Part shown: positions 1 through 59,887 of the stretch, one piece after another
How positions within the stretch are numbered: the first letter of the stretch is position 1
Layout: every line of letters begins with the position of its first letter
DNA from: Hydrolagus colliei
Lineage: Eukaryota
NCBI GenBank assembly: GCA_035084275.1
Contig: CM068742.1
Coordinates: 154,752,001-154,816,000, forward strand
DNA length: 64,000 nucleotides
Reading direction: 5' to 3'
Notes under the pieces: generated by a model
What the model was told of the DNA's origin: nothing
Seen by the model: only the letters and a program-made list of their open reading frames with translations
The model's database searches: none
Program-made: the position numbers and the translations under genes

Positions 1-678
1 TACATCAACTGCGCTACCATTATCCACCCATTCCGTTACCTCATCAAAAAATTCTATCAGATTTGTAAGGCAAGATTTGCCTTTAACAAATCCATGTTGA
101 CTGTCCTTTATTAGCCTATATCTTTCTAAGTGAAGATCTACCTTGTCCCTGATTATGGACTCTAGAATTTTGCCCACTACCGACGTTAGACTGACTGGTC
201 TGTAGTTACCAGGCTTGTCCTTCTGCCCCTTTTTATACAAGGGAGTAACATTAGCTATCCTCCAGTCCTCTGGCACGACCCCTGTGTCCAAGGAAGATTG
301 AAAGATCGTGGCCAGAGTCCCTGCTATTTGCTCCCGTGCCTCACTTAGTAACCTAGGGTGCATCCCATCCGGACCAGGTGACTTATCCACCTTGAGCGAC
401 GTCAACCTTTTTAGAACTTCCTCTCTGGTTATAATTATTCTATCCATTTCTCCTACCCTCTCCTCTAATACCATGGCATTGGCTGTATCATTTTCTTTTG
501 TGAAGACAGAGGCGAAGTAATCATTCAGTACATCAGCCATGCCCTCTGCCTCCACAATGAGATTTCCTCCTAGGTCCCTAATTGGCCCCACCCTCTCCTT
601 GACCAACCTTTTACTCTTAATATGTTGGTAAAAAACCTTAGGGTTCCCCTTAATCTTACTCGCTAATTGTTTTTCATG
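1..678 (-). mobile_element. CR1 LINE ORF2 fragment (young family, inverted)
   Basis: Reverse complement of the + copy at ~2240-2524 and 2790-3213, without the 2525-2789 insert. Confidence 0.9.
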
Positions 679-1610
679 AGGTAACTAGAGGCAGACAACA
701 TGGATTTGTTGAAGGCAAATCTTGCCTAACAAATCCAATAGAATTTTTTGAGGAGGCGACTGCGAGGGTTGCTGAGGGAAATGCGCTGGACGTTATTAAC
801 ATGGATTTCAAAAAGGCTTTTGACACAGGACCGCAGAAGAGATTAATAAACAAATGAGAGGCCCACGGTATTAAGGGGATCGTGGCAGTTTGGAATAAGA
901 ACTGGCTGAGTGACAGAAAGCAGAGGGTGGTGGTTAATGGGTGTTTCTCGAAATGGAAGGAGGTGAGCAGCGGTGACCCCCAGGGATCGGTATTGGGACC
1001 ACTGCTATTTCTAATATATATTAATCATCTGGACTTGGGCACAGAGAGCACTATTGCCAAGTTTGCAGATGATACAAAGTTAGGTAGGGTAGTAAATAGT
1101 GAGGAGGACTGTAACCAACTGCAAGCAGACAAACACAGATTGGTGGAATGGGCTGACATGTGGCAGATGGATTTTAATATGGATAAGTGTGAGGTGATAC
1201 ACTTGGGTAGGAAAAATGATAGGAGGCAATATAGACTCGGTAGCTCAATCTTAAGGGGGGTGAACGTACAGAGAGATCTGGGTGTTCAAGTAAGCGAATC
1301 ATTAAAGGAAGCAGGGCAGGTAGATAAGGCAGTAAACAAGGCATTTGGTGTACTGAGCTTTATTAGTAAAGGCATAGAGTATAAGAGTAGGGAGGTTATG
1401 GTTAATCTATACAAAACACTGGTTAGGCCTCAGCTGGAGTACTGTGTCCAGTTCTGAGCACCTTACTTCAGGAAGGACATTAAGGTACTGGAAAGGGTGC
1501 AGAGGAGACTCAAGAGAATAATACCAGGAATGGGGAACCTTAGCTATGAGGACAGGCTGGAGAAGTTTGGACTTTTCCCATTAGAGCAGAGAAGGTTACG
1601 CGAGGACCGG
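679..1610 (+). mobile_element. Older CR1 RT fragment
   Basis: ORF 882-1457 contains QGSVLGPLLF..KFADDTKL..RPQLEYCVQF; stops and frameshifts flank it. Confidence 0.9.
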
Positions 1611-1789
1611 ATAGATACAACTAATGAGCAGTGGGCAGTATTCAAAGAGGAGATATTTCAGGCACAGGTCAAAAGCATCCCCACAAAGGTGAAATGTAAG
1701 GCATCCAAACCTCACTGAATGACTAAGGCAATCGGGGCCAAAATAAACCAAAAAAAAGAGGCTTATAATAAGTGTCAGGCTCAAAATTC

Positions 1790-2152
1790 AGAATCATAGA
1801 ATCATAGAATCATAGAATTTTACGGCACAAAAGGAGGCCATTTGGCCCATCTAGTCTGTGCCGGCTCTTTGAAAAGAGCGATTCAATCCCACTGCCCTGC
1901 CCGCTCCCCATAGCCTAATAGACCCGTTCTCCCTAAATAAAGATCTAATTCCCTTTTAAAAGTTGTTATCGAATCAGCCTCCACCACCTTTTCAGGCAAT
2001 GCATTCCAGATTCGAACAACTCGCTGAGTGAAAAAATTTCTCCTCAGCTCCCCTCTACTGCGCCTTGAAACTATTTTAAATCTGTGACCACGAGTCACAG
2101 ATTCACCCACGAGTGGAAATAGTTTTTCTCTATTTGCCCTGTCGAAACCTGT
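1790..2152 (-). mobile_element. Nested CR1 3' fragment (same family)
   Basis: Reverse complement of ~4027-4370, including the tail; it interrupts contiguous ORF2 sequence (attcagaa|gggaacc). Confidence 0.9.
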
Positions 2153-2524
2153 CGAAGGGAACCAAGCAGAATATAGGAAGTAAAGGAGGTAAATGTAGGA
2201 TAGAACTAAAAAAGGAAGTTAGAGGGGGAAAGAGACTGCATGAGAAAGAATTAGCGAGTAAGATTAAGGGGAACCCTAAGGTTTTTTACCAACATATTAA
2301 GAGTAAAAGGTTGGTCAAGGATAGGGTGGGGCCAATTAGGGAATCTCATTGTGGACGCAGAGGGCATGGCTGATGTACTGAATGAGTACTTCGTCTCTGT
2401 CTTCACAAAAGAAAAGGATACAGCCAATGCCATAGTATTGGAGGAGAGGCTAGGAGAAATGGATAGAATAATTATAACCAGAGAGGAAGTTCTAAAAAGG
2501 TTGACGTCGCTCAAGGTGGATAAG

Positions 2525-2789
2525 GCGAAGTAGAGGGGAGGTGAGGAGAAATGTTTTTACTCGGCGAGTTGTTCGAATCTGGAATGCATTGCCTGAAAAG
2601 GTGGTGGAGGCTGATTCGATAACAACTTTTAAAAGGGAATTAGATCTTTATTTAGGGAGAACAGGTCTATTAGGCTATGGGGAGCGGGCAGGGCAGTGGG
2701 ATTGAATCGCTCTTTTCAAAGAGCCGGTACAGACTAGATGGGCCGAATGGCCTCCTTTTGTGCAATAAAATTCTATGAATCTGTGAATC
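2525..2789 (+). mobile_element. Nested CR1 3' fragment flanked by TAAG duplication
   Basis: The uninterrupted copy at ~380 reads gtggaTAAGtcacc (reverse complement); here it reads TAAG-insert-TAAG. Confidence 0.9.
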
Positions 2790-4375
2790 TAAGTCACCTG
2801 GTCCGGATGGGATGCACCCTAGGTTACTAAGGGAGGCACGGGAGCAAATAGCAGAGACTCTGGCCACGATCTTTCAATCTTCCTTGGACACAGGGGTGGT
2901 GCCAGAGGACTGGAGGATAGCTAATGCTAATGTCCTTCTGTCCCTTGTATAAAAAGGGGCAGAAGGACAAGCCTGGTAACTACAGACCAGTCAGTCTAAC
3001 GTCGGTAGTGGGCAAATTTCTAGAGTCCATAATCAGGGACAAGATAGATCTTCACTTAGAAAGATATAGGCTAATAAAGGACAGTCAACATGGATTTGTT
3101 AAAGGCAAATCTTGCCTTACAAATCTGATAGAATTTTTTGATGAGGTAACGGAATGGGTGGATAATGGTAGCGCAGTTGATATAGTTTACATGGACTTTC
3201 AAAAGGCATTTGACAAAGTGCCACATGAGAGACTTATTAGGAAATTAAAGGCCCACAGTGTAAAAGGGACAGTGGCAGAGTGGATCCACAACTGGCAGCG
3301 AGACAGAAAGCAGAGAGTTGTAGTGAGTGGCTGTTTTTCAGACTGGAGGGAAGTGAGCAGTGGTGTGCCACAGGGATCGGTTTTGGGACCATTGCTCTTT
3401 GTAATCTACATCAATGATCTGGACTTGGGTGTAGGGAGTACAGTTTCCAAGTTTGCAGATGACACTAAGTTAGGGAGAATAGTAAATAGTGAGGAGGATA
3501 GTAGCCATCTGCAAGAGGATATAGACAAATTGGTAAAGTGGGCAGACACATGGCAGATGAAGTTTAATGCAGAGAAGTGTGAGGTGATGCATTTTGGGAG
3601 AAGAAATGAAGGGAGGCAGTATAGGCTAGATAGTACAATTTTAAATGGTGTGAAGGAAAAGAGAGACCTGGGGATTTGTGTTAGTGACTCGTTGAAGGTG
3701 GCAGGACAGGTAGACAAGGCTGTTAAGAAGGCATATGGGATGCTAGGCTTTATAAATAGGGGTATAGAGTACAAAAGTCAGGAAGTGCTGACTAACCTCT
3801 ATAAAACTTTGGTGAGGCCTCAGCTGGAATACTGTGTTCAATTCTGGTCACCACACTACAGAAAGGATGTGAAGACATTGGAAAGGGTACAAAGAAGATT
3901 TACTAGGATGGTGCCAGGATTGATGGACTTCAGCTATGAGGAGAGGCTAGATAGGCTAGGGTTATTCTCTCTGGAGCAGAGAAGGTTGAGGGGAGACCTA
4001 ATAGAGGTTTATAAGATCATGAGGGGTTTCGACAGGGCAAATAGAGAAAAACTATTTCCACTCGTGGGCGAATCTGTGACTCGTGGTCACAGATTTAAAA
4101 TATTTTCAAGGCGAAGTAGAGGGGAGCTGAGGAGAAATTTTTTCACTCAGCGAGTTGTTCGAATCTGGAATGCATTGCCTGAAAAGGTGGTGGAGGCTGA
4201 TTCGATAACAACTTTTAAAAGGGAATTAGATCTTTATTTAGGGAGAACAGGTCTATTAGGCTATGGGGAGCGGGCAGGGCAGTGGGATTGAATCACTCTT
4301 TTCAAAGAGCCGGCACACACTAGATGGGCCGAATGGCCTCCTTTTGTGCCGTAAAATTCTATGAATCTATGAATC

Positions 4376-4815
4376 TAGGTCTTCAAGATCATGAAAGGTT
4401 GCGACAGCTAGGTAGGGAAAAGCTGTTTCCGCTGGTAGGTGTGTCTGTGACCCGTGGTCACAGTCTTAAGGTATCTAGCAAAAGAAGCAGAGGGGAGGTT
4501 AGAAGAAATTTTTTTACTCAGCGTGTTGTTCGAATTTGGAATGATCTGCCTGAAAGGGAAGTGAGATCCGATTCGATAGCAGCTTTTGAGAGAGAACTAG
4601 ATAGGTATCTGGGGAAGATGGGTTTGCAGGGTTATGGGGAGAAAGCTGGTGATTGGGGTTAATGATAGCCAGCGCCTTGGGACTTCCTCCCGACGTGAAA
4701 GGCGCTCTATAAATGTAAATTGTTGTTATTTGTTGTTGTTGCTCGGTCACAGAGCTGGCACAGACTCGATGGGCCGAATGGCCTCCTTCTGTGCCGGAAC
4801 ATTCTATGATTCTAT
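4376..4815 (+). mobile_element. Additional CR1 3' fragments with an L2-type tail between them
   Basis: REKLFPLVG..RNFFTQRV..WN frame in ORF 4324-4662; CR1 tail at ~4800. Confidence 0.85.
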
Positions 4816-6252: not shown

Positions 6253-6636
6253 GTCATAAAAAGAAGCTCTCATCAGTGACTGGTACCAAGGGAGGTGATG
6301 CCACACTGCCCTGCTCCTTCACCAGGCCCAACACACACCAGAATCGTGCCACAGTCACAGTGATTTGGAGGAGAGGGAGGCCACAAGGGCAGCCAGTTTC
6401 TAATGACACTCTTGACCTCACCTCCCGCTCCAAACCCAGGGAGTCAGAGACAGTGAATGAAGGAAATCGCTATAACCTGGTTGGGAATGTGAGGGATGGA
6501 GACGCTTCCCTGAGGATCAGGGACCTGGAGTTAAACGACACCGACCAGTATTTCTGTCATGTACACGTCATGTTTATCAATAGCGGAGAACAACAAGATC
6601 ATGTGACACAGGACATGTCACAGCTGCTGGTTGTTG
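6253..6636 (+). CDS. SIGLEC15-like: Gene A exon: Ig V-set domain, Siglec-15-like, lacking the sialic-acid-binding Arg
   Basis: Acceptor ttcctgtctcAG|GT and donor G|GTAAGA; 384 nt, phase 1-1. Encodes TLPCSFTRP..VIWRRG..RYNLVGNVRDGDASLRIRDLELNDTDQYFCHVH, which matches the Siglec-15 V pattern (LPCTFTHP, GNPRRNDLSLR, YFCRVE) with R->H. Confidence 0.92.
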
Positions 6637-7229: not shown

Positions 7230-7825
7230 CTCCATTTTCCCAGCAATGAGTATGAATCATTGTAAAAGGTTTAGAGTACAAGAGAAGGGAATTCTTGCTG
7301 CAACTGTATAGGGCCTTGGTGAGACTTCACCTAGAGTATTGTATGCAGTTTTGGTCTCCTTATTTAATAAAGGACATACTTGCCTTAGAGGGGGGGGGGC
7401 AGTGTAGATTCATTAGGTTAGTTCCTGGGATGAGGGGACTAAACTATGAAGATAGGTTGAATAAACTAGGGCTGTATTCTCTAGAGTAAGAAGAATTAGG
7501 GGAGATTTGTTTTGAAGCATGTAACATTCTCAAAGGGCTGGATAAAGTAGACACCAAGGGATTGTTTCCCTGGTAGGAGAATCTATAACCAGGGTTCATA
7601 ATCTTCAAATTAAGGGTCAGCCTTTTAGAACAGAGTTGAGGAAACATTTCTTCACTCAGAGGGTAGTGAATTTATGGAATTCACTACCCCAGAAGGCTGT
7701 AGATGCCCAGTCCTTAAACATTTTCAAGGCTGAGACTGATAGATTTTTTTTAAAAGAAACAGATTTGGGGATATGGGAATGGGGCAGGTGATTAGAGTTG
7801 GGTGAGAAGATCAGCCATGAGATAT
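7230..7825 (+). mobile_element. CR1 3' fragment (older subfamily)
   Basis: [21 protein letters not shown]..; frameshifted. Confidence 0.85.
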
Positions 7826-8218: not shown

Positions 8219-8659
8219 CTCCGGCCATCATTGTTAATCTGTCCCTCGTGGCCGGTGATGGAGCCGGAGGTGGCATCGTGTGCACGGCTGAGGGGGAACC
8301 GCTGGCCACCATCACATGGATCGACCCCCAGAATAACACGCTGCCCGTCAACACCCACACGTCAATCACACATATACCAGACACACATCTAACCGTGGGG
8401 GAGATCTGGGGCCTGAGGCTGAGGGGAACTTACCGCTGTGTAGCTGAGAACACACAGGGCAGTGACACACAAGACATCCTCATCACTGCCTTACAGAGTG
8501 TTGGGGACAAGGAGAGTGATGGGGACAGGGAGAGTGATGGGGACAGGGAGAATGGTGGAGATAAGGAGAGTGGTGGAGACAATACAGTATGTATCGTAGT
8601 CTCCACTGTGGTGCTGCTCGTTCTGCTGACTGCCTTAATTATCTGGTGGGTAAAGAGAG
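8219..8659 (+). CDS. SIGLEC15-like: Gene A exon: Ig C2-type domain, repeat-extended stalk and uncharged TM
   Basis: Acceptor tttctttatacccaaAG|CT and donor G|GTAGGT; 441 nt, phase 1-1. Encodes APAIIVNLS..CTAEGEPLATITW..YRCVAENTQG (Siglec-15: APRIVNIS..CTAEGEPPPALAW..YTCTAANSLG); TM VCIVVSTVVLLVLLTALIIWWV followed by KR. Confidence 0.92.
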
Positions 8660-9044: not shown

Positions 9045-10335
9045 TATTTCGAGTAAACTAGATAGGGGTGAATCAGTGGATGTTGTCTATTTGGACATCC
9101 AGAAGGCATTCGATATGGTGCCGCATTAAAGGTTGATCCATAAGATAGGGGCTTACAGAATTGGGGGAAAATATTAACATGGATTAGGTAATAGTTAATA
9201 GGTAGGAAACAAAGAGCAGGGATAAACAGGTCTTTCTCAGATAGGCGGGATGTGACTAGTGGAGTGCCACAAGGATCAGTTCTTGGACCTCAGCTATTTA
9301 CCATCTACATCAATGATCTAGATAAGGACATTGAGCTTAATATATCTAAATTTGCTGATGATACGAAACTAGGAGGAAGCATTAATACCAAGGATGATAT
9401 TTTAAAAATGCAGCGCGATATAGATAGGTTAGGTGAGTGAGAAGGTAGGTGGCAGATGCAGTATAATGTAGGGAAGTGCAAGGTCATTCACCTAGGTAGC
9501 AAAAACATCAACAACAACAATAACTTCAATTTATATAGCGCCCTCCACACCGGACGGTGTCTCAGAGTGCTTCGCATCAGAGCAGGTTATTCTTTAGAGG
9601 GGGAGAGATTGGAAACTGTTAGCATGTCGAGGGACTTGGGTGTCCTTGAACACCAAAACCAAAAGTTAATATGCAGGTGCAGCAGGCAATTAGGAAAGCT
9701 AACGGTATGTTAGCTTTCATTATGAAAGGGTTAGAGTATAAGAGTAGGGAAGTCTTGCTGCAGCTGTATAGGGCCCTGATGAGACCACACCTGGAATACT
9801 GTGTGAAGTTTTGGTCTCCTTATTTAAGAAAGGATGTACTTGCCTTGGAGGGAAGTACGTTGGTTGTAGCGTAGGTTTACTAGGTTAGTACCTGGAATGA
9901 GGGGCATGAGTTATGATGATAAGTTGATTAATTTGGGCCCATATTCTCTGGCATATAGAAGAATTAGAGGGGATCTTATGGAAACCTATAAGATTATTGA
10001 GGGGCACGACAAAGTAGATAGTGTTTCCCCTGCTTGGAGAATCTAAAACCAGGGGTCACAGTCTTAAAGTTAGAAAAAGCCCTTTCACACTGAGTTGAGA
10101 AAAAACTTCTTCACTCAGGGTGGTGAATGTATGGAATTCTTTACCCCAAAGGGCTGTTGATGCTCAGTCCTTGAACATATTCAAGACCAAGTTGATTAGA
10201 TTTCTCATTTATAAGGGATTAAGGGGTATGGGGATAAGGCAGGTAGCTGGAGTTAGAGTAGAATATCAGCCATGATTGAATGGCGGGGCAGGCTCGAGGG
10301 GCCGAATGGTCTACTCCTGCTCCTATTTCTTATGC
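9045..10335 (+). mobile_element. Degenerate CR1 RT/3' region with a short L2-tail insert (~9505-9580)
   Basis: VPQGSVLGPQLF..FADDTKL and RPHLEYCVKFWSP in broken frames. Confidence 0.9.
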
Positions 10336-10699: not shown

Positions 10700-10730
10700 G
10701 TGTTGGAGTTTCCCGCCAGCATTCAGAGAG
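10700..10730 (+). CDS. Gene A cytoplasmic exon 1 (GVGVSRQHSE)
   Basis: ctttggtctcttcAG acceptor, GTGAGT donor; 31 nt, phase 1-2. Same-length paralog at 54421-54451 (-). Confidence 0.85.
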
Positions 10731-12083: not shown

Positions 12084-12145
12084 TCGTCAAATGGATTTGG
12101 TTGTTGACAACGACTTGGTTCAGTCTCAGCTGCCTACAGGAGACG
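12084..12145 (+). CDS. Gene A cytoplasmic exon 2 (SRQMDLVVDNDLVQSQLPTGD)
   Basis: ttctatttttttAG acceptor, GTAACT donor; 62 nt, phase 2-1, which restores frame. Paralog at 50939-51000 (-). Confidence 0.85.
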
Positions 12146-12602: not shown

Positions 12603-12662
12603 ATGAAGCTGCTGTAATCTACAGCGTGGTCACTCCATCACCAGCTCGGCAAACAGGTTTAG
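12603..12662 (+). CDS. Gene A ITIM exon 1 (DEAAVIYSVVTPSPARQTGL)
   Basis: tgttgtgtctctgacAG acceptor, GTAAGT donor; 60 nt, phase 1-1. VIYSVV fits the ITIM consensus. Confidence 0.87.
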
Positions 12663-13369
12663 GTAAGTCACATGGGGACAAAGCCAGCATTGCCTCGCCT
12701 CTCAGCCGACAGGCAACTGCCTTCCCTTTGCTGGCTCACATGCCAGCACTCTAACCTCTCAGTTAACCTCTCTGGGTCCAAGTGACAAATTAGATCCTTC
12801 CACTCACAAACATCTAGTCTAACAGTGAACACACCAGGGCAGTGCTGGAGGAGAAGTACATTGGTTTGCTTAAGATGAGATTCCATATATGCCTGTTGAG
12901 GAGGATGTTAAAGATCCAGTGGCTCAATTGGAAAACACAAGGGAACTTCTCCCCGGGTGCAGATAAAATTGATCATTCATTTCATGTTTATGGGATGTTA
13001 CTGGAAGCAAATTGGCAGTCACGTTTACCAACAAATACAGTCATTAAACTTCAAGGTAGCAATGTGACAGTAGGCAGTGACATGCATTGAAATATTTTGA
13101 CACACAAAGAAATTGAAAGCCAATGAGGAAAGGGGAGTTGGACTAAAGGGAGAGTCTTTCAGAGCCTCACAGGCATCACTGGCCTCCAACTTGGCATAAA
13201 TGTTCTGCTGGTATAAACAGGGCTGTAATGAGAGGGGAGCATTAGGGTCTGTCATGGGATGGCTGAGAGGGACTTTATAGAGGCTGCTGCTGCCCAGGGA
13301 TAAGGTGGAATGTGGCAAAGGGGAAGCTGAAGAGGGATGGAAAGGTGCTGACTGTTGTGTCTCTGACAG

Positions 13370-13429
13370 ATGAAGCTGCTGTGATCTACAGCGAGGTTAC
13401 CCCAGCACTGGCCAGGCAAACAGCTTCAG
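13370..13429 (+). CDS. Gene A ITIM exon 2 (DEAAVIYSEVTPALARQTAS)
   Basis: Same acceptor context as the previous exon, GTAAGA donor; 60 nt, phase 1-1. VIYSEV is an ITIM. Confidence 0.87.
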
Positions 13430-14551
13430 GTAAGAAATGTATCACACAGGGACAGATCTGGCATTGTCTTACCTCTCAACCGACCTTCTCTCTCCTGTGC
13501 AGGGTTAACTATCATCCTGGCTCTGTTGGAAATATTCTCAGTCAGATGGTTGTGGATTCATCCCCCAAATTGGGACTTTTACACATAATCTATGTGAGGA
13601 AGTTCACATTATCGGAGGCATCGTCCAACAGACCCTGTTCAGGTGGAAGTTAAAGATCCTATGGTACAACAACAAGGAAATTACATTTGTATAGTACCTT
13701 TCACGTTGGGACATCCTCCTGATGTGAAAGCCACTACACTAGTGTAATTTTGTTGTTGTTGTTGGGAGGGCGTCTCAAGGTTTGTACTGTTAGAAAAGAG
13801 AAGGGAGTTTATCTGGGTGTCTAGATTAAATTGTTTATTTACTTCATGGCAGTTTGTGGGTCCAAATTGACTGTCGCGTTCAACAACAAAATTACTCATG
13901 TACGGCGACTTTCATGTCCAGGCGGATGTGGTGCTGGACAGTTACTGCTTCGGACGATCTGAGCACAGGGGCGTGTGGGGAAGGAGATGCCGTTGGGTCC
14001 ATCGAAGAGGAGAGTGTTGAGGCGATACCTGAAAGAGTCCAGTGAGGGGGCGAGGTGGAGGAATTTGGGGATGGCATTCCAGAGGTTGGGGTCAGAGTGA
14101 CTGAAGGCTCAACAAATACACAGTCGCAACATAATATAGTGAATCCTGTAAAATGCTATTATACATACTTTGATATGTTTTGACAATGTGATAGCCCCAC
14201 TTTGCCATGTCCCCCAAATGTGAAATGGATAATAAATTATTGTTGCTGTTGTTGTTATATGAAATGCCAGGAATAATATCCAATTGAGCATTGACCTCAG
14301 AGACATGGGGGTTGCTCACCAGCCCACAGGGCCTGGCTTGTAGTTCCAATTCCTAGTTCACTGTTCATTCCTCGAACCCTTTGACTCAGCTTTTGGGACT
14401 GAGCTTCATACTTTACCTCTCTGGAATTTATCTCTGGAATTCCATATACACAGTACATACACACTCTGTTTGATAACTAGTGTCATATTTGCTTTGTGAA
14501 GCCGATTTCCAATTGCTAATTATTTACCAACATTGTCTGTCTTTCCTTCAG

Positions 14552-14590
14552 ATGTGTACGGAAATTCTACCATCAGAACCGTCGATGACA
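14552..14590 (+). CDS. Gene A YxN exon (DVYGNSTIRTVDD)
   Basis: gtctttccttcAG acceptor, GTGAGT donor; 39 nt, phase 1-1. Paralog at 44755-44790 (-). Confidence 0.83.
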
Positions 14591-14699
14591 GTGAGTGTTG
14601 TCTACCTTTTCTGGTTTATTGTTTATCCAGTCTCTTCTCCGCTCGCACTCTGGCTTTGGGTCAGGAGGAGGGGTATTGGAGCCTCTACGATGGGGAATT

Positions 14700-15055
14700 T
14701 GAGGTCACACAGTCCAGGCTGATGCTCCAGTGCAGCAATGGGGAGAGCGCTGCATTGTCAGAAGTGCTGTCCTTTGATTGCGATGTTAAACTGAGATCAA
14801 GTCCGTGTCTGTTGAAGTTTTTTTGGTCAGCCACGTGCAGAAACACATCTACTGTGGCAAGGGGACCCAAACCTGACTGAGAGTTTCTGTCTCCTGCACG
14901 TGGAAATTTGCTGCATCTGGAATGCAATGTGCTGTTGAGAAGGGAATTTCTCTCTCCTTGTGTCCTGGCCATCAATGCTTCAAATAAAATTGGTCACTCA
15001 CATCATGGCTGTTTGTGGGACACTTCAAATGCAAATTAGGCAACAGGTTTGCTGA
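14700..15055 (+). mobile_element. Old Deu-domain-type SINE remnant
   Basis: gatgttaaac..tgtcctggcca..ggctgtttgtgggac motifs, shared with 18480-18730 and 18870-19110. Confidence 0.5.
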
Positions 15056-15234
15056 TAAAATACATAATCAGTGCAATGGACAGCGATTCCCTTTGAGACA
15101 TACATACCTTATACTAAAGGCATGATATTAAGTATGAGGGTTCTAATAACTTTAACCTGGTCACACAGTGTATCGCAGCTCTCAGCAAGTAGAGATACAT
15201 TACATGTCCTGACTCCATTTTGTTTCTCTTCTAG

Positions 15235-15284
15235 ATGTGATTTATGCTGTTGTCAACATGATGACGAGTTCAGTTAACCAGTGA
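15235..15284 (+). CDS. Gene A terminal coding exon with ITIM (NVIYAVVNMMTSSVNQ*)
   Basis: ttgtttctcttctAG acceptor, phase 1; VIYAVV ITIM; TGA at 15282-15284. Paralog at 44386-44438 (-). Confidence 0.85.
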
Positions 15285-16386: not shown

Positions 16387-16819
16387 AACCAGAGTTCTCC
16401 CCAGCCCAGCCAAACCAGAGCTCTCCCCAGCCCAGCCCAGCTAAACCAGAGCTCTCCCCAGCCCAGCCCAGCTAAACCAGAGCTCTCCCCAGCCCAGCTA
16501 AACCAGAGCTCTCCCCAGCCCAGCCCAGCTAAACCAGAGCTCTCCCCAGCCCAGCTAAATCAGAGCTCTCCCCAGCCCAGCTAAACCAGAGCTCTCCCCA
16601 GCCCAGCCCAGCTAAACCAGAGCTCTCCCCAGCCCAGCCCAGCTAAACCAGAGCTCTCCCCAGCCCAGCTAAACCAGAGCTCTCCCCAGCCCAGCCCAGC
16701 TAAACCAGAGCTCTCCCCAGCCCAGCCCAGCCCAGCTAAACCAGAGCTCTCCCCAGCCCAGCTAAACCAGAGCTCTCCCCAGCCCAGCCCAGCCAAACCA
16801 GAGCTCTCCCCAGCCCAGC
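16387..16819. repeat. Minisatellite, about 15 units of TAAACCAGAGCTCTCC(CCAGC)2-4 (26/31/36 bp)
   Basis: Directly visible tandem array; unit length varies in steps of the pentamer CCAGC. Confidence 0.97.
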
Positions 16820-17715: not shown

Positions 17716-17767
17716 GACTTCAAGAAAGTTGTTTAGTTAGAATAACTGTGTTTCTTTATACCCAAAG

Positions 17768-18137
17768 CTCCCGCTGTCCTCCTGACTCTGTCCCTCGTGG
17801 CCGGTGATGGAGCCGGAGGTGGCATCGTGTACACGGCTGAGGGGGAACTACCAGCCACCATCAGAGGGATTGATCCCCAGAATACAAGCTGCCCGTCAAC
17901 ACCAGCCACACACCAGTCACACACATACCAGACACATATCTAACTGTGGGGAAGATCTGGGACCTGACGCTGAGGGGAACTTATCGCTGTGTAGCTGAGA
18001 ACACACAGGGCAGAGACATCCTCATCACTGCCCCCCACAGAGTGATGGGGACAGAGAAAGTGATCCTGTGTCTGATATACGCAGCTAAATACCTGTTTAT
18101 GTTGGTCATGGGGATCGTTCTCATTAGAAAACTAAAG
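17768..18137 (+). pseudogene. SIGLEC15-like: Pseudogene B: Siglec-15-like C2 + Lys-containing TM exon
   Basis: Acceptor and C2 DNA are near-identical to 8219 and 56116. Lesions: B-strand Cys TGC->TAC, TW->RG, and a 1-nt deletion (aatacaagctgccc vs aataacacgctgccc) giving TAA. The downstream frame encodes TM VILCLIYAAKYLFMLVMGIVLI-RKLK, then a GTTAGT donor (phase 0). Confidence 0.85.
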
Positions 18138-19166
18138 GTTAGTTCATTACCAGAAATGAGCCCAGAGCTGGGATGGGTTCAGGGTGAGCTGAAAGATGCG
18201 GCCAACTTGGTAGCCAGATTCCTGAGCCAGGTATTCCCACCATCCTTCAGGATGATGCTTGATGCTGGATGAGCTGGTGTGGCACACCAGTTGGATTTGG
18301 AGGAACAGAAATTCAATTGTGAATTAAAAAGCTCTAATTGTTTAGGTGGATCTAATTGGACAAGCAGTTAGAAGCTTGAGACAGTTTTAGCAATGGCCAA
18401 CTATTGTAGCTAATTATACTTTAGCAAACCCAAGGGACCTTTGGAGTCCATAACCCTTGCCAATCCGCATGCCTCTCATGGTGCAAATTGTTGGAGGTGG
18501 TGTCCTTCTGATGACTTGTTAAACCAAGGTTTTCTCTGCCTCTACAGTTAGACATTAAAGATCCCATAATTTTATTGGAAAAACGAAGGAAGTTTTACTC
18601 TCCCTCTATCCTGGCCAACAATCCACTAAATAAAACAGGTCACTCATTTCCCGACTATTATTGGGACGTTGCTGTGTAAGAATTGGCTGCCGTTTTCACC
18701 CACAAAATACAGTCACTCCACTGTGAAGAGAAAATGCGCCCAGTGACCATTCCATGTATTACAACAGTTTGATTGTCACCCTCCCAATCTTAGTAATGTA
18801 CACAGTTATAATGGTGATACTATTTAACAAGTATAACATGATCACTCTGGAAATATTTCCCCAAATAGTCTCAGGATTGTTAGCTGAGCCAGATGTTCTC
18901 CTGGTTCAATTGGTAACACACATACCTCTGGGACAAAAGGTTGTGGGTTCAAAGTCCATGTTGGGAGAACGCAATAGGAGAGTAATGCTGCATTGCTGAA
19001 AAGTTACATCTTCCAAAGAGAGGTAAACCAAGGTCCCATCTATGTTTGTTTGTGGGACTTTGCAATGTGCACATCAACTGCTGTGTTTGCCTACAAATTG
19101 CTCACCACATTTTAAAATTTCAGATGAAATTCAGCCATTCAATGGTATTCTCTTTCCCCCTCACAG

Positions 19167-36760: not shown

Positions 36761-37419
36761 AAAGTAGATTAGGAAAGAGGTAAGAGAAGAGGAACTCTGT
36801 GATGGAGAGGGGAGACAAGATTAAAGCGCAACCACTGATGTGGGCAGGCAGGGTGGGGGCCGTAAATTGGGTGGTGCCTGTCGCGCAGCTCAGCTGCTTA
36901 GGAAAAAAATGTAGACTTTGGTGTGTATGTGTGTATATGTTCTAAACTGTCTGTGACCTCTAAATGTAACTGGCTAGTGCAGTCATATTCTTGGAACAAA
37001 ACCCTCTGCCAGTGGTTGGGGATTCCCCTACTGGGGGAACCCCCTCAACAGACAAGGGTTCCCCCAAAGCACCACACTGCCTCAGTAGCTCTGTTGAGAC
37101 TGTTATTGCTCTGAGTATCTGTGGAATAAGGCAGAGTTCTTCCTCTGTGTTTTGCTCCCCAGTGAAGTTTAAAAATCATCTTTGTTTGTGTTACAAAATC
37201 CACGTCTAATATTTAGGCCGCAATAGAAACGTCTTGAACTCAAATAATTTTCCTATAGGGCAAAAGAGCTAGGGACTGAGACAAATAATAATAATAATTT
37301 AATAATCCTTGCTTTTTATCATGCTTTTCAGGTCTTCTAGACCAGTGTTTCTCAAGAACCATTCAGTGAACTGGTGCTTGTCAGTGTAAGATTAGAGACA
37401 AAATAAATACATATATTCT

Positions 37420-37830
37420 CTCTAGAACAGAGAAGAGACCTGATAGAGGTCTGAGAGGGGACCTGTTAGAGGTTTATAAAATCAAGAGGGGATTCGACAG
37501 GGTGAATAGGGAAAAACTATTTCCACTGGTGGGCGAATCAGTGACTTGTGGTCACAGATTTAAAATAGTTTCAAAACGAAGCAGAGGGGAGCTGAGGAGA
37601 AATGTTTTCACTCAGTGGGTTGTTGGAATCTGGAATGCATTGCCTGGAAAGGTGGTGGAGGCAGATTCCATAACAGCTTTTAAAAGAGAATTAGATCTTT
37701 ATTTAGGAAGAGCAGGTCTGTTAGGTTATGGGGGGAGAGCTGGGCAGTGGGATTGAGTTGCTCTGTTCAAAGAGCCGGCACAGACTAGACGCGCCGAATG
37801 ACCTTCTTTTGTGCCTTAAGATTCTTTGTA
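37420..37830 (+). mobile_element. CR1 3' fragment
   Basis: ORF 37502-37756: REKLFPLVGES..WNALP..GQWD. Confidence 0.9.
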
Positions 37831-38545: not shown

Positions 38546-39709
38546 AACTGTGCTCTCCACATGTTCTATCTCCGTATTGTACCATATTTCCTTCCTAGAC
38601 CCAACTCTAGTTCCCTCTTTCCCTTTCTCTTTCACTTCCATTCACCTCTCCCTCTATCCATACCATTCTCCCTTCTCTCTGTCTTAATTCCTTTTCCCTT
38701 CTTTCCCTCTCTCATCCTCCCTCCATCTTCTTGCCGCCATGTCCCACAATCTTTGTTGGTCATATACAGAAACATATTTTTCCCTCTTTGTGACTTCCTT
38801 CCACTCCTTGTTCTCCTAACCATCCAGTTGTTACCAACCCACCTCCTCACTCTACCCCTAGGTCCTCAATCTTTTGGGGGTATTTATCCAGTTCTCTTGT
38901 GAACAATTCTCTTGTTCCAACCTTGGCAGCCTCTCACAGGAGTGAATTCCAAGCCCAGCCACAAATCTGCAATCTGGGTCGATTTGTGGAATAAAAGACA
39001 TTTCCACAGGTAAAGCTTGATAAATCTCCGTATTTATATGAATTCCCAGGTCTCCCTGTTCCTTCACCGATTTTAAGATTTTTCATCTAGTTTATATTGA
39101 AATAATGTACTACCTGTTTCGTCTCATTCTTCCTCTCAAAATGCGTTAGTTCACATTTCTCCACATTAACCTTCAACTGCCACATGTCTGCCCATTTTAG
39201 GAGTCTGCCTCTTGCAGTCTGATATTATCCTCCTACTACTTTTCCTAGTTTAGTATCATCTGCAAACTTGGAAATTGTACTCCCTTTCCCCCAAATCCAG
39301 TGAACTGTATGTATAAATATCAAAAAGAGCAGTGGCTCCAACACCAACCCCTAGAGGGAACCACTGCCCACTTCCCTTGAATTAGGAAAATACACCATCA
39401 CTCTGTGCTAACTGTCTCTCAGCCAGTTCTGTATCCATGCTGCTGTTGTCTCTTTTATATTGTGGGCATTTTGTATTCCGGAATTAGGCAATCAGGGTGT
39501 GTTCCTCCAGGGAAAGATTGTGCAGTACAAGCCAAACACAGAAAATAAGCCCATTTATACACTCGTGCTTTATATAAACTTATGCTTATACTTAAACTTG
39601 CTTTAACACATGAACTGACTGTCATGGGGACCTTGACTGCTCTGTCACACTTCATAGCTTCTCGCTCTGTGCAATGTGTTGGTATAGGATTGAATTGTTC
39701 TTTTCAAAG

Positions 39710-40490
39710 AAAAGCATATGGGATACTAGGCTTTATAAATAGAGGTATAGAATACAAAAGTCAGGAAGTTCTGACTAACCTCTATAAAACTTTGGTTAGG
39801 CCTCAGCTGGAGTACTGTGTACAATTCTGGTCACCACACTTTAGGAAGGATGTTAAGGCATTGGAAAGGGTGCAGAGGAGAATTACTAGGATGGTACCAG
39901 GAATGAGGGACTTCAGCTACGAGGAAAGGCTAGATTGGCTAGGCTTATTCTCATTGGAACACAGAAGGTTAATAGAGGATTTTAAGATCATGAAGGGATT
40001 CAACAGTGTAAACAGAGAAAAACTGTTTCCACTGGTGGGTGTATCAGTGACTCGTGGTCACAGATTTAAAATACAGTAAAAAGCCGATTTATCTGTGACC
40101 TGATCAACTGTAACTTCCGTATACCTGGAACCTCAAAAAAAATCTGCATTCAATTAACCGGAATTTAGCCGGAATGTTTTAAAAAATTTGTGTTTTCGGA
40201 CGAATATGCAGCACGCGCGTTAACCAGCATTGGCCAGGACCCGAGGGTGTCGGATAAAATGGCTTTTACTGTAGTTTCAAAAAGAAGTAGAGGGGAGGTG
40301 AGGAGAAATTTTTTCACTCAGGGAGTTGTTGGAATCTGGAATGCATTGCCTGAAAAGGTGGTGGAGGCCAATCCGATAACAACCTTTAAAAGAGAGGTAG
40401 ACGTTTATTTAGGGAGGACAGGTTTGCGAGGTTATGGAGAGAGAGCTGGGGATTTGGATTGAATTGCTCTTTTCAAAGAGCCGGCACAAT
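39710..40490 (+). mobile_element. CR1 3' fragment interrupted by a MITE
   Basis: KAYGILGFINRGIEYKSQEV.. frame; the sequence resumes after 40273. Confidence 0.9.
40074..40271. mobile_element. Tc1/mariner-pogo (Tigger-like) MITE, 198 bp
   Basis: TA|CAGTAAAAAGCCGATTTATC...GATAAAATGGCTTTTACTG|TA; the empty CR1 site reads tttaaaaTAgtttc. Confidence 0.9.
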
Positions 40491-45539: not shown

Positions 45540-47710
45540 CAACAAGAGAACAAGTGATACTTAGAATCGACAAGGGAATAAACCATACTGGATTTGGTGA
45601 TGAGTAATGAGACAGAACTACTTAACAATCTGAGAGTAAGGGAACGTCTTGAAAACAGTGATCATAATCTGATTGAATTTGACACTAGATTTGAGAGGGA
45701 GAGTCCCAAACTAAAGATTTAAATGTATTTAAGCCAAACTTTGATGGGATGGGAAATATATTGACCACAGTAAACTGGGATGAATTGTTCGTGGGTAAAC
45801 CTACAGATGAACAATGGGAAGTATTCAAAAAAAATACTATACAGAGCAAGTACATACCCCTGAAATGCAATAGCTCAAATCGTGCAGTTAAGCAACCATG
45901 ATGGACAAAAGAGGTTAGAGACTGTATCAAGCTAAAACAAAAAAAAATTACTGAGGACATCTGAAGAAGCTGGAAAGGGATTAAAACGAAAAGAATGAAA
46001 GGAGCAAAAAGGGTGTATGAACAAAAACTTGCAAGGGATACTAAAAAAAAAGTATGAGGGCAAAATATCAGCCCAACAGGGGAACCTGAAAATAAATGAA
46101 AGAGAAATGCTTCATCAAATAAAAGCAAATAATAAAATGGTAATGGAGAAAATAACAGACTCAAAACAGACAAATCTCTAGGACCTGATAGTTTTCACCC
46201 CAGGGTGTTAAAGGAAATAGGAGAGGAAGCTGTGGATGCATTTGTCATAATTTTCCAAAGCTCCCTAGATTTTAGAATTGTGCTCTTAGGTTGGAAAATT
46301 GCAAATGCCACCCCTTTATTTAAGAAGAGAGGGAGGGAGAAACTAGAAAACTATAGACCTGTCAGCTTAATGTCAGTTGTAGGGAAAATATTGGAATCTA
46401 TCATCAGGGACAGAGTGACTGAACACCTGAGCGGTATGAGCTTGTCAAAGACAGTCAGGATTGGTTTGTGAAGTGTAAGTCACATCTGACTAATCTAGTT
46501 GAATTTTTTGAGGAAGCCATTAAAATAGTAGATGAGAAAGTATCTATTTATGGTGATTTATATGGACTTACCGAAGGCATTGGATAAGATTCCACACAAA
46601 AGATTATTAGCGAAAATGGAAGCGGAGGTAACTTTGTGATGTGTCTTGTCAATTAGTCAGGAGGCAAGAAACAGAGAGGGAATGTTCTCTGATTGGTGGG
46701 ACGTGACAATTGTATCCCCCAGGGGTCTATATAGGGCCCTATTTGCCATGGATATAAATGACTTGGATAAAGGAATAGAAAGTTTTATATCCAAGTTTGC
46801 AGACGATACTAAGATCGGAGGCTCATTAAGTAGTGTAGATGGGAGAGGAAGTTACAAAGGGACTTAGACAGATTAAGTGAGTGGGAAAGCTGTGGCAGAT
46901 GGAGATCAATGTAGGGAAGTGCAAGGTCATCCACTATGGACACAGAAAAGATAAGGCAGAATATTTTATTAAGAGGGAGAAATTAAGAACTGTGGAGGAT
47001 CAAAGAGATTTGGGTCCATCTCCGCAAATTACTAAAAACCAGTTCCCAGATGTAAATCAAAAAGGTGAATGGAATGTTGGCCTTTATCTCGAAGGACCTG
47101 GAATACAAAGGGGGAAGAACTGATGCTTCAGCTGTACAGAGTCAGATGCCATCTGGAAACTGCATTCAGTTTTGGGCACTAACCTCAGGAAAGATATATT
47201 GGCCCTAGATGGGGTGCAGCGCAGGTTCACCAGAACGTTACCAGGCCTAAAAGGGTTATGTTACGAGAAAATAATGCGTAAACTTGGATTGTATTCCCTT
47301 GAGTTTAGAAGGTTGAGGGGTGATTTGATTGATCTTTAAAGGTATTTGAGATGTTAAAGGGATTTGTTAGGGTAGATACAGAGAAGCTATTTCCTCTGGC
47401 GAGGGAATTGAAGACAAAGAGACATAATCTTAAAATTAGAACCAGGTGATTTAAGAGTGAAATCAGGACATTTTTTCATTCAAAGGATAGTAGAAATCTG
47501 GAATTCTCTTCTCCCAAAAGATACTGCATCCATACACAATTTGAAGCGTGAGGTTGATACATCTTGGATACGTCAGGGTATTAAGGGATATGGGGAGAAA
47601 ACGGGAGATTGGAATTGAAATTAGTAGAACTACAGATCGGCCATGATATAACTAAATGGTGGAACAGGCTCGAATGGTTGAATGGCCTACTCCTGTTCCT
47701 GTGTTTCTTT
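45540..47710 (+). mobile_element. Long degenerate CR1 ORF2 remnant
   Basis: ENYRPVSL, SKFADDTK and WNSL motifs across many frameshifts; CR1-type 3' UTR. Confidence 0.9.
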
Positions 47711-59403: not shown

Positions 59404-59887
59404 TTTACTAGGATGGTGCCAGGATTGAGGGACTTCAGCTATGAGGAGAGGCTAGATAGGCTAGGGTTATTCTCTCTGGAGCAGAGAAGATTGAGGGGAG
59501 ACCTAATAGAGGTTTATAAGATCATGAGGGGTTTCGACAGGGCAAATAGAGAAAAACTATTTCCACTCGTGGGTGAATCTGTGACTCGTGGTCACAGATT
59601 TAAAATAGTTTCAAGGCGCAGTAGAGGGGAGCTGAGGAGAAATTTTTTCACTCAGCGAGTTGTTCGAATCTGGAATGCATTGCCTGAAAAGGTGGTGGAG
59701 GCTGATTCGATAACAACTTTTAAAAGGGAATTAGATCTTTATTTAGGAAGAACGGGTCTATTAGGCTATGGGGAGCGGGCAGGGCAATGGGATTGAATCG
59801 CTCTTTTCAAAGAGCCGGCACAGACTAGATGGGCCGAATGGCCTCCTTTTGTGCCGTAAAATTCTATGATTCTATGATTCTATGATT
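59404..59887 (+). mobile_element. Young CR1 3' fragment
   Basis: ORF 59413-59796 differs by 2 residues from the C-terminus of ORF 2924-4291; full (attctatg) tail. Confidence 0.95.

Follow-up and report, generated by a model that had tools for sequence, protein, structure and literature searches.

In mammals, Siglec-15 is regarded as a lone, conserved, DAP12-coupled receptor, and it is a current target of immunotherapy. A lysine in its transmembrane segment and signaling through DAP12 are reported in PMC13711574. In CD22, three immunoreceptor tyrosine-based inhibitory motifs (ITIMs) bind SHP-1 and a phosphorylated YENV motif binds Grb2 (PMC6286995), and in PD-1 two phosphotyrosine motifs are reported to bind SHP2 simultaneously (PMC6994217). 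Here we describe gene A, found in a stretch of 64,000 nucleotides (nt) from Hydrolagus colliei (GenBank assembly GCA_035084275.1, contig CM068742.1, positions 154,752,001 to 154,816,000 of the forward strand; hereafter the window). Its four most distal coding exons probably encode the ITIM-bearing tail of an inhibitory receptor of the Siglec-15-like kind.

The gene organization of related receptors provides the frame of reference. Symmetric exons of phase 1 are a general rule in genes of the immunoglobulin superfamily (IgSF), and in paired receptors the activating form has its transmembrane segment and tail in one exon, whereas the inhibitory form has separate tail exons (PMC2413239). Paired Siglecs are described as well known (PMC4042635, PMC5701461). 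In PECAM-1, a tyrosine exon of 19 residues (exon 14) undergoes alternative splicing that affects function (PMC2132561). SHP-2 is reported to be conserved in sharks (PMC12151841).

Results

The tail exons of gene A

The exons in question (Table 1) are most probably the four 3'-most coding exons of a type-I IgSF inhibitory receptor with a V-set/V-set/C2 ectodomain and a modular ITIM tail, which belongs to a local Siglec-15-like cluster. The comparisons reported here demonstrate the exon structure, the frame and the duplication of this tail, and its conservation in paralogs and across Chondrichthyes. A sequence-only reading of the same DNA had listed the tail motifs as VIYSVV, VIYSEV, DVYGNS and VIYAVV, with one tyrosine per exon. 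This proved exact: the motifs are those of exon A1, exon A2, the YxN exon and the terminal exon, respectively, and the tyrosines occupy tail positions 7, 27, 43 and 57, with those of the two 60-nt exons 20 residues apart, as claimed. The proposed composition of three ITIMs plus one Tyr-x-Asn (YxN) site was likewise recovered in the phase-1 translation. The ITIM consensus [ILVS]xYxx[ILV] is matched three times in the tail of gene A and twice canonically in that of gene C, an inverted paralog in the same window. At the six-frame background rate of the window (0.0024 per residue), the probability of at least three matches in 69 residues is P ~7e-4. Asparagine at position +2 of a cytoplasmic tyrosine occurs as YGN in gene A, YAN in gene C, YEN in Heptranchias and in lungfish Siglec-15, and YSN in Narcine and a batoid.

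The splicing frame of these exons is consistent throughout. Each is preceded by a pyrimidine-rich tract and an AG, and all introns between the four are of phase 1. In the 60-nt and terminal exons of both gene A and gene C, phases 0 and 2 run into stops and only phase 1 is open, which is the frame in which the sequence-only reading had taken these exons to be coding. That they are coding in this frame is further supported by homologous tails in NCBI and UniProt gene models of Callorhinchus, Heptranchias, Narcine and a batoid. One refinement is the addition of two more cytoplasmic exons, the juxtamembrane exons of Table 1, 5' of the four. An origin by chance, or as a non-coding repeat, was ruled out by the motif probability, the presence of four cassette copies and the single open frame.

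Duplication of the cassette exons

The two 60-nt exons had been proposed to be tandem duplicates, and their comparison establishes that they are. A1 and A2 are adjacent, in one orientation and phase; they are identical at 49 of 60 positions, share the same 19-nt acceptor, ACTGTTGTGTCTCTGACAG, and are homologous into both intron flanks. Their downstream introns are 78% identical over ~55 nt, and upstream the homology of A1 extends over only 19 nt. The duplicated unit is ~190 nt long, consisting of the exon and its intron flanks. With up to 3 mismatches, the acceptor occurs 4 times in the window, against 0.05 expected; the cassette copies in the window are four only, two per gene. Between A1 and A2 the proportion of synonymous differences (pS) is 0.38, versus 0.12 for non-synonymous differences (pN). 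The broader proposal, that the tail was assembled from duplicated 60-nt exons, holds for these two but not for the tail as a whole, since demonstrable duplication links only one pair among the four exons.

The history of the cassette involves more than one event. When the six holocephalan copies and their flanks were aligned, a core group emerged (A2, C2, Callorhinchus copy 1) that is 83-86% identical over 190 nt, with extended synteny of the flanks, also between A2 and Callorhinchus copy 1. The other three are secondary copies. A1 has an upstream position and lacks the 70-nt upstream flank; C1 is also upstream, lacks the downstream flank and has a 6-nt deletion; and Callorhinchus copy 2 has a downstream position and an unrelated downstream flank. 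Because the secondary copies differ in flank breakpoints and positions, they point to recurrent events. Together with the two copies of Callorhinchus LOC103188796, which are identical at 59 of 60 exon positions, they indicate that duplication or gene conversion occurred more than once. With phase 1 in every distal intron, duplication, loss or skipping of a cassette leaves the frame intact.

A Siglec-15-like family with paired forms

The sequence-only reading had set the tail against mammalian Siglec-15, and the receptor is indeed Siglec-15-like: the best PDB match to the ectodomain of gene C (V1, V2 and C2) is human Siglec-15, 7ZOZ (E 2e-30; V1 alone, 5e-17). Gene C keeps the motifs FTHPH..Y.G, GNPRRND and CRVE, including the essential arginine in V1, where SCRVEL aligns to FCRVE of 7ZOZ; its V2 has a histidine there. 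The V-set exon of gene A within the window, 84% identical in amino acids to V2 of gene C, also has a histidine in place of the sialic-acid arginine (YFCHVHV); a V1 exon of gene A is not in the window. With its Pfam domains and transmembrane segment, gene A has the makings of a type-I membrane protein with an Ig-like ectodomain.

Two features set these genes apart from Siglec-15 in the strict sense, which has one V and one C2 domain, a lysine in the transmembrane segment and a short, ITIM-free tail. Gene C and the Callorhinchus and shark homologs are V-V-C2, and gene A combines an uncharged transmembrane segment with a tail of 103 residues and three ITIMs, which fits the earlier remark that mammalian Siglec-15 has no such tail. 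In both gene A and gene C the transmembrane segment lacks a charged residue, as expected of receptors that do not pair with an adaptor; Callorhinchus LOC103188801 and LOC103188796 and Heptranchias isoform X3 share the uncharged segment and the tyrosine tail. By contrast, the activating homologs P0002, P0008 and P0010-13 have a lysine in the transmembrane segment, and the shark and ray homologs that NCBI names Siglec-15 have such a segment and almost no tail; that is, they are of the DAP12-type activating form. Siglec-15-like Ig domains joined to an uncharged transmembrane segment thus suggest an inhibitory counterpart of the lysine-bearing, DAP12-type genes. Judged by these sequence features, genes A and C are inhibitory paralogs, not orthologs, of Siglec-15.

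Homologs in other cartilaginous fishes and lungfish

A first homology search returned, at E<=0.001, chondrichthyan proteins only, the best from Callorhinchus milii with 61-73% identity, as fits a source that is another, related holocephalan; a second search (HMMER, seed P0001) added remoter relatives, including lungfish Siglec-15. When the 98-residue tail of gene C was used alone, no match was found at E<=10, the tail being too short for a database of 5.8 billion sequences.

In Callorhinchus, XP_007907103 ends in ...DEAAVIYSEVTPVSARQRDS DEAAVICSVVPPAPARQTDS DVIYAVVTKSKGRSAEQ, and the C-terminus of XP_042187952 has two DEAAVIYSVV cassettes. In loci L002 and L003 of this species the cassettes are separate 60-nt exons, ~0.8-1.1 kb apart. 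One of the two Callorhinchus genes lacks the YxN exon; in the locus examined for the other, neither this exon nor a terminal one is present. In LOC103188801 the second cassette (L003 14221-14280) has a cysteine for the tyrosine, DEAAVICSVV, and the YxN exon is absent throughout the last intron. The sequence of this gene indicates a natural loss of two modules that are present in the window.

The elasmobranch tails are built alike, from a unit of 24-26 residues. Heptranchias XP_067838218 carries seven modules, with TVYENC among them and AAIYAAVV at the end, and TVYENCSTRASED is its counterpart of the YxN exon; Narcine and a batoid have 4-5 tyrosine modules. In the batoid locus L001 each tyrosine is in its own exon, and all tail exons are of phase 1, starting G/AT as in gene A. 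The terminal exon of gene A has counterparts in Callorhinchus DVIYAVVTKSKGRSAEQ and elasmobranch AAIYA[AT]V. Counting this exon type in orthologs had been put forward as a check on the tail; the count is two cassettes in Callorhinchus and 3 to 7 tyrosine exons across the shark and ray homologs. The proposal that the number of ITIMs can be tuned by duplication is borne out at the evolutionary level, where duplication, loss and decay are all seen in paralogs and orthologs. Compared by eye only, EAAVIYSVVTPSPARQT, the unit of holocephalans, and EAGSVPVYSIITGTVSQQAET, that of sharks, seem alignable; if this likeness holds, the cassette would be older than the holocephalan-elasmobranch split.

Isoform X2 of Siglec-15 from the lungfish Protopterus annectens (P0026) has a lysine-containing transmembrane segment and a short tail that ends in STYENV, which is both ITIM-like and a YxN site. 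From this tail, the YxN site may be ancestral in the Siglec-15 lineage.

Table 1. Features of genes A to D in the window. Positions are those of the window; exon sequences are given with the residue of the split codon in front.
Feature	Position	Strand	Length	Phase	Details
Gene A V2 exon	6253-6636	+		1	V-set Ig, membrane-distal-but-one; AG/GT; Pfam V-set E 5e-15
Gene A C2/transmembrane exon	8219-8659	+		1	C2/I-set Ig, acidic repeat stalk and uncharged transmembrane segment; AG/GT; ends ...IIWWVKR G/gt
Gene A juxtamembrane exon 1	10700-10730	+	31 nt	1 to 2	G VGVSRQHSE
Gene A juxtamembrane exon 2	12084-12145	+	62 nt	2 to 1	S RQMDLVVDNDLVQSQLPTGD; tblastn match to the tail of Callorhinchus P0001; aligns with gene C
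Gene A ITIM cassette exon, copy A1	12603-12662	+	60 nt	1-1	D EAAVIYSVVTPSPARQTGL; AG acceptor, donor GTAAGT
Gene A upstream intron flank of cassette	13298-13369	+	~70 nt		Common to A2, both gene C and both Callorhinchus copies (86-92%); A1 has the last 19 nt only
Gene A ITIM cassette exon, copy A2	13370-13429	+	60 nt	1-1	D EAAVIYSEVTPALARQTAS; AG acceptor, donor GTAAGA
Gene A YxN exon	14552-14590	+	39 nt	1-1	D VYGNSTIRTVDD; AG acceptor, donor GTGAGT
Gene A terminal coding exon	15235-15284	+			N VIYAVVNMMTSSVNQ; AG acceptor, stop TGA 15282-15284
Gene B	17730-18170	+			Lone C2 and transmembrane exon, activating type; transmembrane segment VILCLIYAAKYLFMLVMGIVL contains Lys
Gene C	63156-44386	-			Inverted paralog, complete from V1 to stop; nine AG/GT exons, intact open reading frame of 481 amino acids
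Gene C V1	63156-62767	-			V-set exon
Gene C V2	58724-58341	-			V-set exon
Gene C C2/transmembrane exon	56116-55739	-			C2 and transmembrane segment
Gene C juxtamembrane exons	54451-54421 and 51000-50939	-	31 nt, 62 nt		As in gene A
Gene C cassette C1	49638-49585	-	54 nt		Degenerate, VIYSEA
Gene C cassette C2 copy	47903-47844	-	60 nt		VIYSEV
Gene C YxN exon	44790-44755	-	36 nt		YAN; 82.5% identical to the gene A YxN exon
Gene C terminal exon	44438-44386	-			VVYAEV
Gene D	28056-27670 and 25534-25193	-			One V-set exon (canonical YFCRVEI Arg motif) and a C2/uncharged-transmembrane exon

The remainder of gene A and the other genes of the window

The window is vertebrate DNA of ~44% GC, with no N runs and many reverse-transcriptase fragments of long interspersed nuclear elements (LINEs). 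In it, gene A has 8 exons that are canonical at their splice sites and join into a single open frame of 374 codons. The C2/I-set domain (Pfam I-set E 7e-11) is followed by the hydrophobic transmembrane segment VCIVVSTVVLLVLLTALIIWW. The cytoplasmic domain of 103 residues is spread over six small exons, and its only tyrosines are those of the four distal ones. Juxtamembrane exon 1 is the sole strong AG/GT candidate of the correct phase; it is 88% identical to its gene C counterpart and matches the Callorhinchus juxtamembrane segments GDGVGHCCQCSE (P0014) and DCGTRHSLQLSE (P0001). Neither of the juxtamembrane exons is symmetric, and skipping would need both together. Splicing of the transmembrane exon directly to 12603 is also in frame; it was dropped as the main model given that both juxtamembrane exons are conserved.

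The first V-set exon and the leader of gene A were not found within the window, which starts only 6.2 kb 5' of its V2. These exons may lie off-window, because the V1-V2 intron is 4 kb long in gene C and most of the 6.2 kb, namely 4 kb, consists of LINE insertions. The stalk of gene A contains an 18-nt tandem repeat in 4.9 copies (8495-8582, plus strand) encoding GDKESDGDRESDGDRENGGDKESGGD, which is absent in gene C; a comparable DG.R.SDG stalk repeat is found in Callorhinchus LOC103188801. As the repeat differs among the three genes, the length of the stalk is variable.

The tail of gene C follows the plan of that of gene A. Between V2 of the two genes, pN (0.075) exceeds pS (0.045), an excess of non-synonymous change that either diversifying selection or gene conversion in the ectodomain could explain. 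With a ratio of non-synonymous to synonymous rates (dN/dS) of 0.88 in the tail and pN>pS in V2, the comparison of the paralogs is uninformative as a test of coding constraint.

Gene B has a 1-nt deletion that shifts the frame, a tyrosine for an Ig-fold cysteine and a glycine for a conserved tryptophan, and no V exons were found nearby. By these sequence defects, it is a pseudogene fragment of an activating partner. Gene D is a fourth member of the family. It most resembles P0039, in which SQTPEENPVTE repeats form a long tail array; the tail exons of gene D itself were not located in the window. With two domains, its predicted architecture is closer to true Siglec-15 than that of the V-V-C2 genes.

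A minisatellite of 31-nt units in 14 copies (16400-16819, plus strand) lies ~1.1 kb 3' of the stop of gene A; one of its frames is open, as PAQLNQSSPQPSPAKPELS, and it is probably non-coding. LINE reverse-transcriptase and endonuclease fragments of one family were found at 650-4660, 7256-7788, 9195-10272, 37370-37753, 39549-40459, 46136-47336 (+) and 59404-59793. One of them lies immediately 3' of the transmembrane exon of gene A, so that this exon is parted from intron sequence which adjoins its counterpart in gene C.

Discussion

Three ITIMs and one YxN site are the inventory of CD22, and we thus read the tail of gene A as inhibitory, a module that recruits SHP and branches to Grb2. By analogy with established ITIM and SH2 biology, ligand engagement would lead Src-family kinases to phosphorylate the tail tyrosines. 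Paired phosphorylated ITIMs, 14-30 residues apart, would then dock the tandem SH2 domains of SHP-1 or SHP-2, and possibly SHIP, while the phosphorylated YxN site would dock Grb2, as in CD22. The receptor would in this way counteract lysine-bearing, DAP12-type Siglec-15-like partners of the same gene family, and duplication, loss or decay of cassettes over evolution would account for the 3 to 7 tyrosine modules across genes and species. As to the binding of sialylated glycans, the analysis covered the arginine motif.

Several points weigh against this interpretation. Because V1 and the leader are not in the window, it is unproven that gene A as a whole is intact. The inclusion of each exon in mRNA is deduced from the gene models of homologs, and these models are in large part computational. 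Binding of SHP-1/2, SHIP and Grb2, as well as phosphorylation and inhibition, is predicted entirely from known receptors. The tails of paralogs A and C evolve almost neutrally overall, with the motif cores alone invariant. Finally, modules can decay, as illustrated by VIYSEA in gene C and by the exchange of tyrosine for cysteine and the missing YxN exon in LOC103188801, so not all of them are necessarily functional.

Beyond evolutionary change, the number of modules could be set physiologically, by regulated skipping of cassette exons, which would yield isoforms that carry one, two or three ITIMs and either include or lack the YxN site. The exon symmetry permits this, since the four distal exons are all of phase 1-1 and any subset remains in frame, and some homologs are labeled 'isoform X2/X3'. 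Regulated cassette exons are known for conserved flanks, and here the 70-nt upstream flank is 92% identical to that of Callorhinchus (L002 27774-27843), compared with 88% for the exon and 78-80% for other aligned intron (binomial P ~0.007). There is also a precedent in PECAM-1, whose 19-residue tyrosine exon is skipped (PMC2132561). However, the strong consensus splice sites are typical of constitutive exons, and gene conversion between copies, as suggested by the 59/60 identity in Callorhinchus, could by itself explain the identity of the flanks. Either a splicing-regulatory element or a tract of gene conversion may account for the upstream flank. Flank conservation was downgraded as proof of regulated splicing, given that unique intron is mostly 78-80% identical between holocephalans and that gene conversion is evident. 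On balance, we regard regulated skipping as possible but doubtful. A more far-reaching version holds that the cassette and its 70-nt flank form a regulated exon that sets how strongly a sialic-acid receptor inhibits in chondrichthyan leukocytes through the ITIM and Grb2 modules spliced in, and that it is an ancient mobile module, predating the holocephalan-elasmobranch split and repeatedly copied. This we put forward still more tentatively.

The tyrosines might instead serve mainly as YxxPhi sorting and endocytosis signals that bind AP-2 and govern surface level and internalization. YSVV, YSEV and YAVV all fit this pattern, and in CD22 and CD33-type Siglecs endocytosis is likewise under the control of the ITIM tyrosines. 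Yet the ITIM-defining position -2 (V/I), which plays no part for AP-2, is retained in the majority of modules of both holocephalans and elasmobranchs (VIY, VVY, PVY, IIY, AIY), and the conserved asparagine at +2 of the third tyrosine is a determinant of Grb2 SH2 binding, not of sorting. We thus find a predominantly endocytic role unlikely, noting that endocytic and ITIM roles are not mutually exclusive. A slightly less likely alternative still is that gene A is a decaying or truncated copy without the first V domain, in which the tail has been kept merely because the duplication is young, and that the functional gene is the paralog on the minus strand. The missing V1 and leader, the LINE fragments that fill much of the 5' sequence, the paralog dN/dS of ~0.9 and the clear pseudogene next to it, gene B, all fit such a history. 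On the other hand, gene A shows eight recognizable exons, none of them damaged: their splice sites match the consensus and no stop interrupts them. In addition, the length of the gene C V1-V2 intron and the extent of the LINE insertions leave room for a V1 off-window. An inhibitory receptor with a modular ITIM tail is the reading that we retain.

In a literature search we found no paper on ITIM-bearing Siglec-15-like genes in cartilaginous fish, which is not proof of absence; homologs of gene A already exist as automatic annotations. The mechanism is not new, its design being known from the PECAM-1, FcR-like, CEACAM and CD22 genes. Nor is phase-1 symmetry a special feature of gene A, and tails made of mini-exons are known in PECAM-1 and FcR-like genes. 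The family is thus a modestly new addition to the ITIM-bearing IgSF receptors, of mainly evolutionary interest. The locus and its homologs indicate that cartilaginous fishes have a multigene Siglec-15-like family with paired activating and inhibitory forms, and that the inhibitory forms carry a CD22-like tail of ITIMs and a Grb2 site. This helps to date the ITIM/SHP and YxN/Grb2 signaling logic of Siglecs to the base of the jawed vertebrates. It also provides a clean natural example of a signaling motif whose copy number evolves by duplication, decay and loss of phase-1 exons.

Among known systems, mammalian Siglec-15 is the nearest relative in the ectodomain, sharing the FTHPH..Y.G, GNPRRND and FCRVE motifs, the last with its arginine in V1 of gene C. 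It differs in having one V-set and one C2 domain; an additional V-set domain, with a histidine for the arginine, is present in genes A and C. CD22 (Siglec-2) resembles gene A as a type-I Siglec with a tail of several small exons, three ITIMs and one YxN site, but it has 7 Ig domains, another order and spacing of motifs and extra tyrosines, and homology of the tail sequences is not demonstrated. PECAM-1 (CD31) likewise has a tail of short exons with the ITIM tyrosines in separate exons; its tail exons are, however, not recent tandem duplicates, and its ectodomain is unrelated. Finally, paired Siglecs (Siglec-5/14 and -11/16), KIR, FcR-like/XFL and CEACAM1/3 combine near-identical ectodomains with either an ITIM tail or a charged transmembrane segment and short tail, and their arrangement, with transmembrane segment and tail in one exon in the activating form and separate tail exons in the inhibitory form, is also the one seen here. 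The present family differs from them in belonging to another gene lineage, in Chondrichthyes, and in that the activating partner within the window is a pseudogene fragment.

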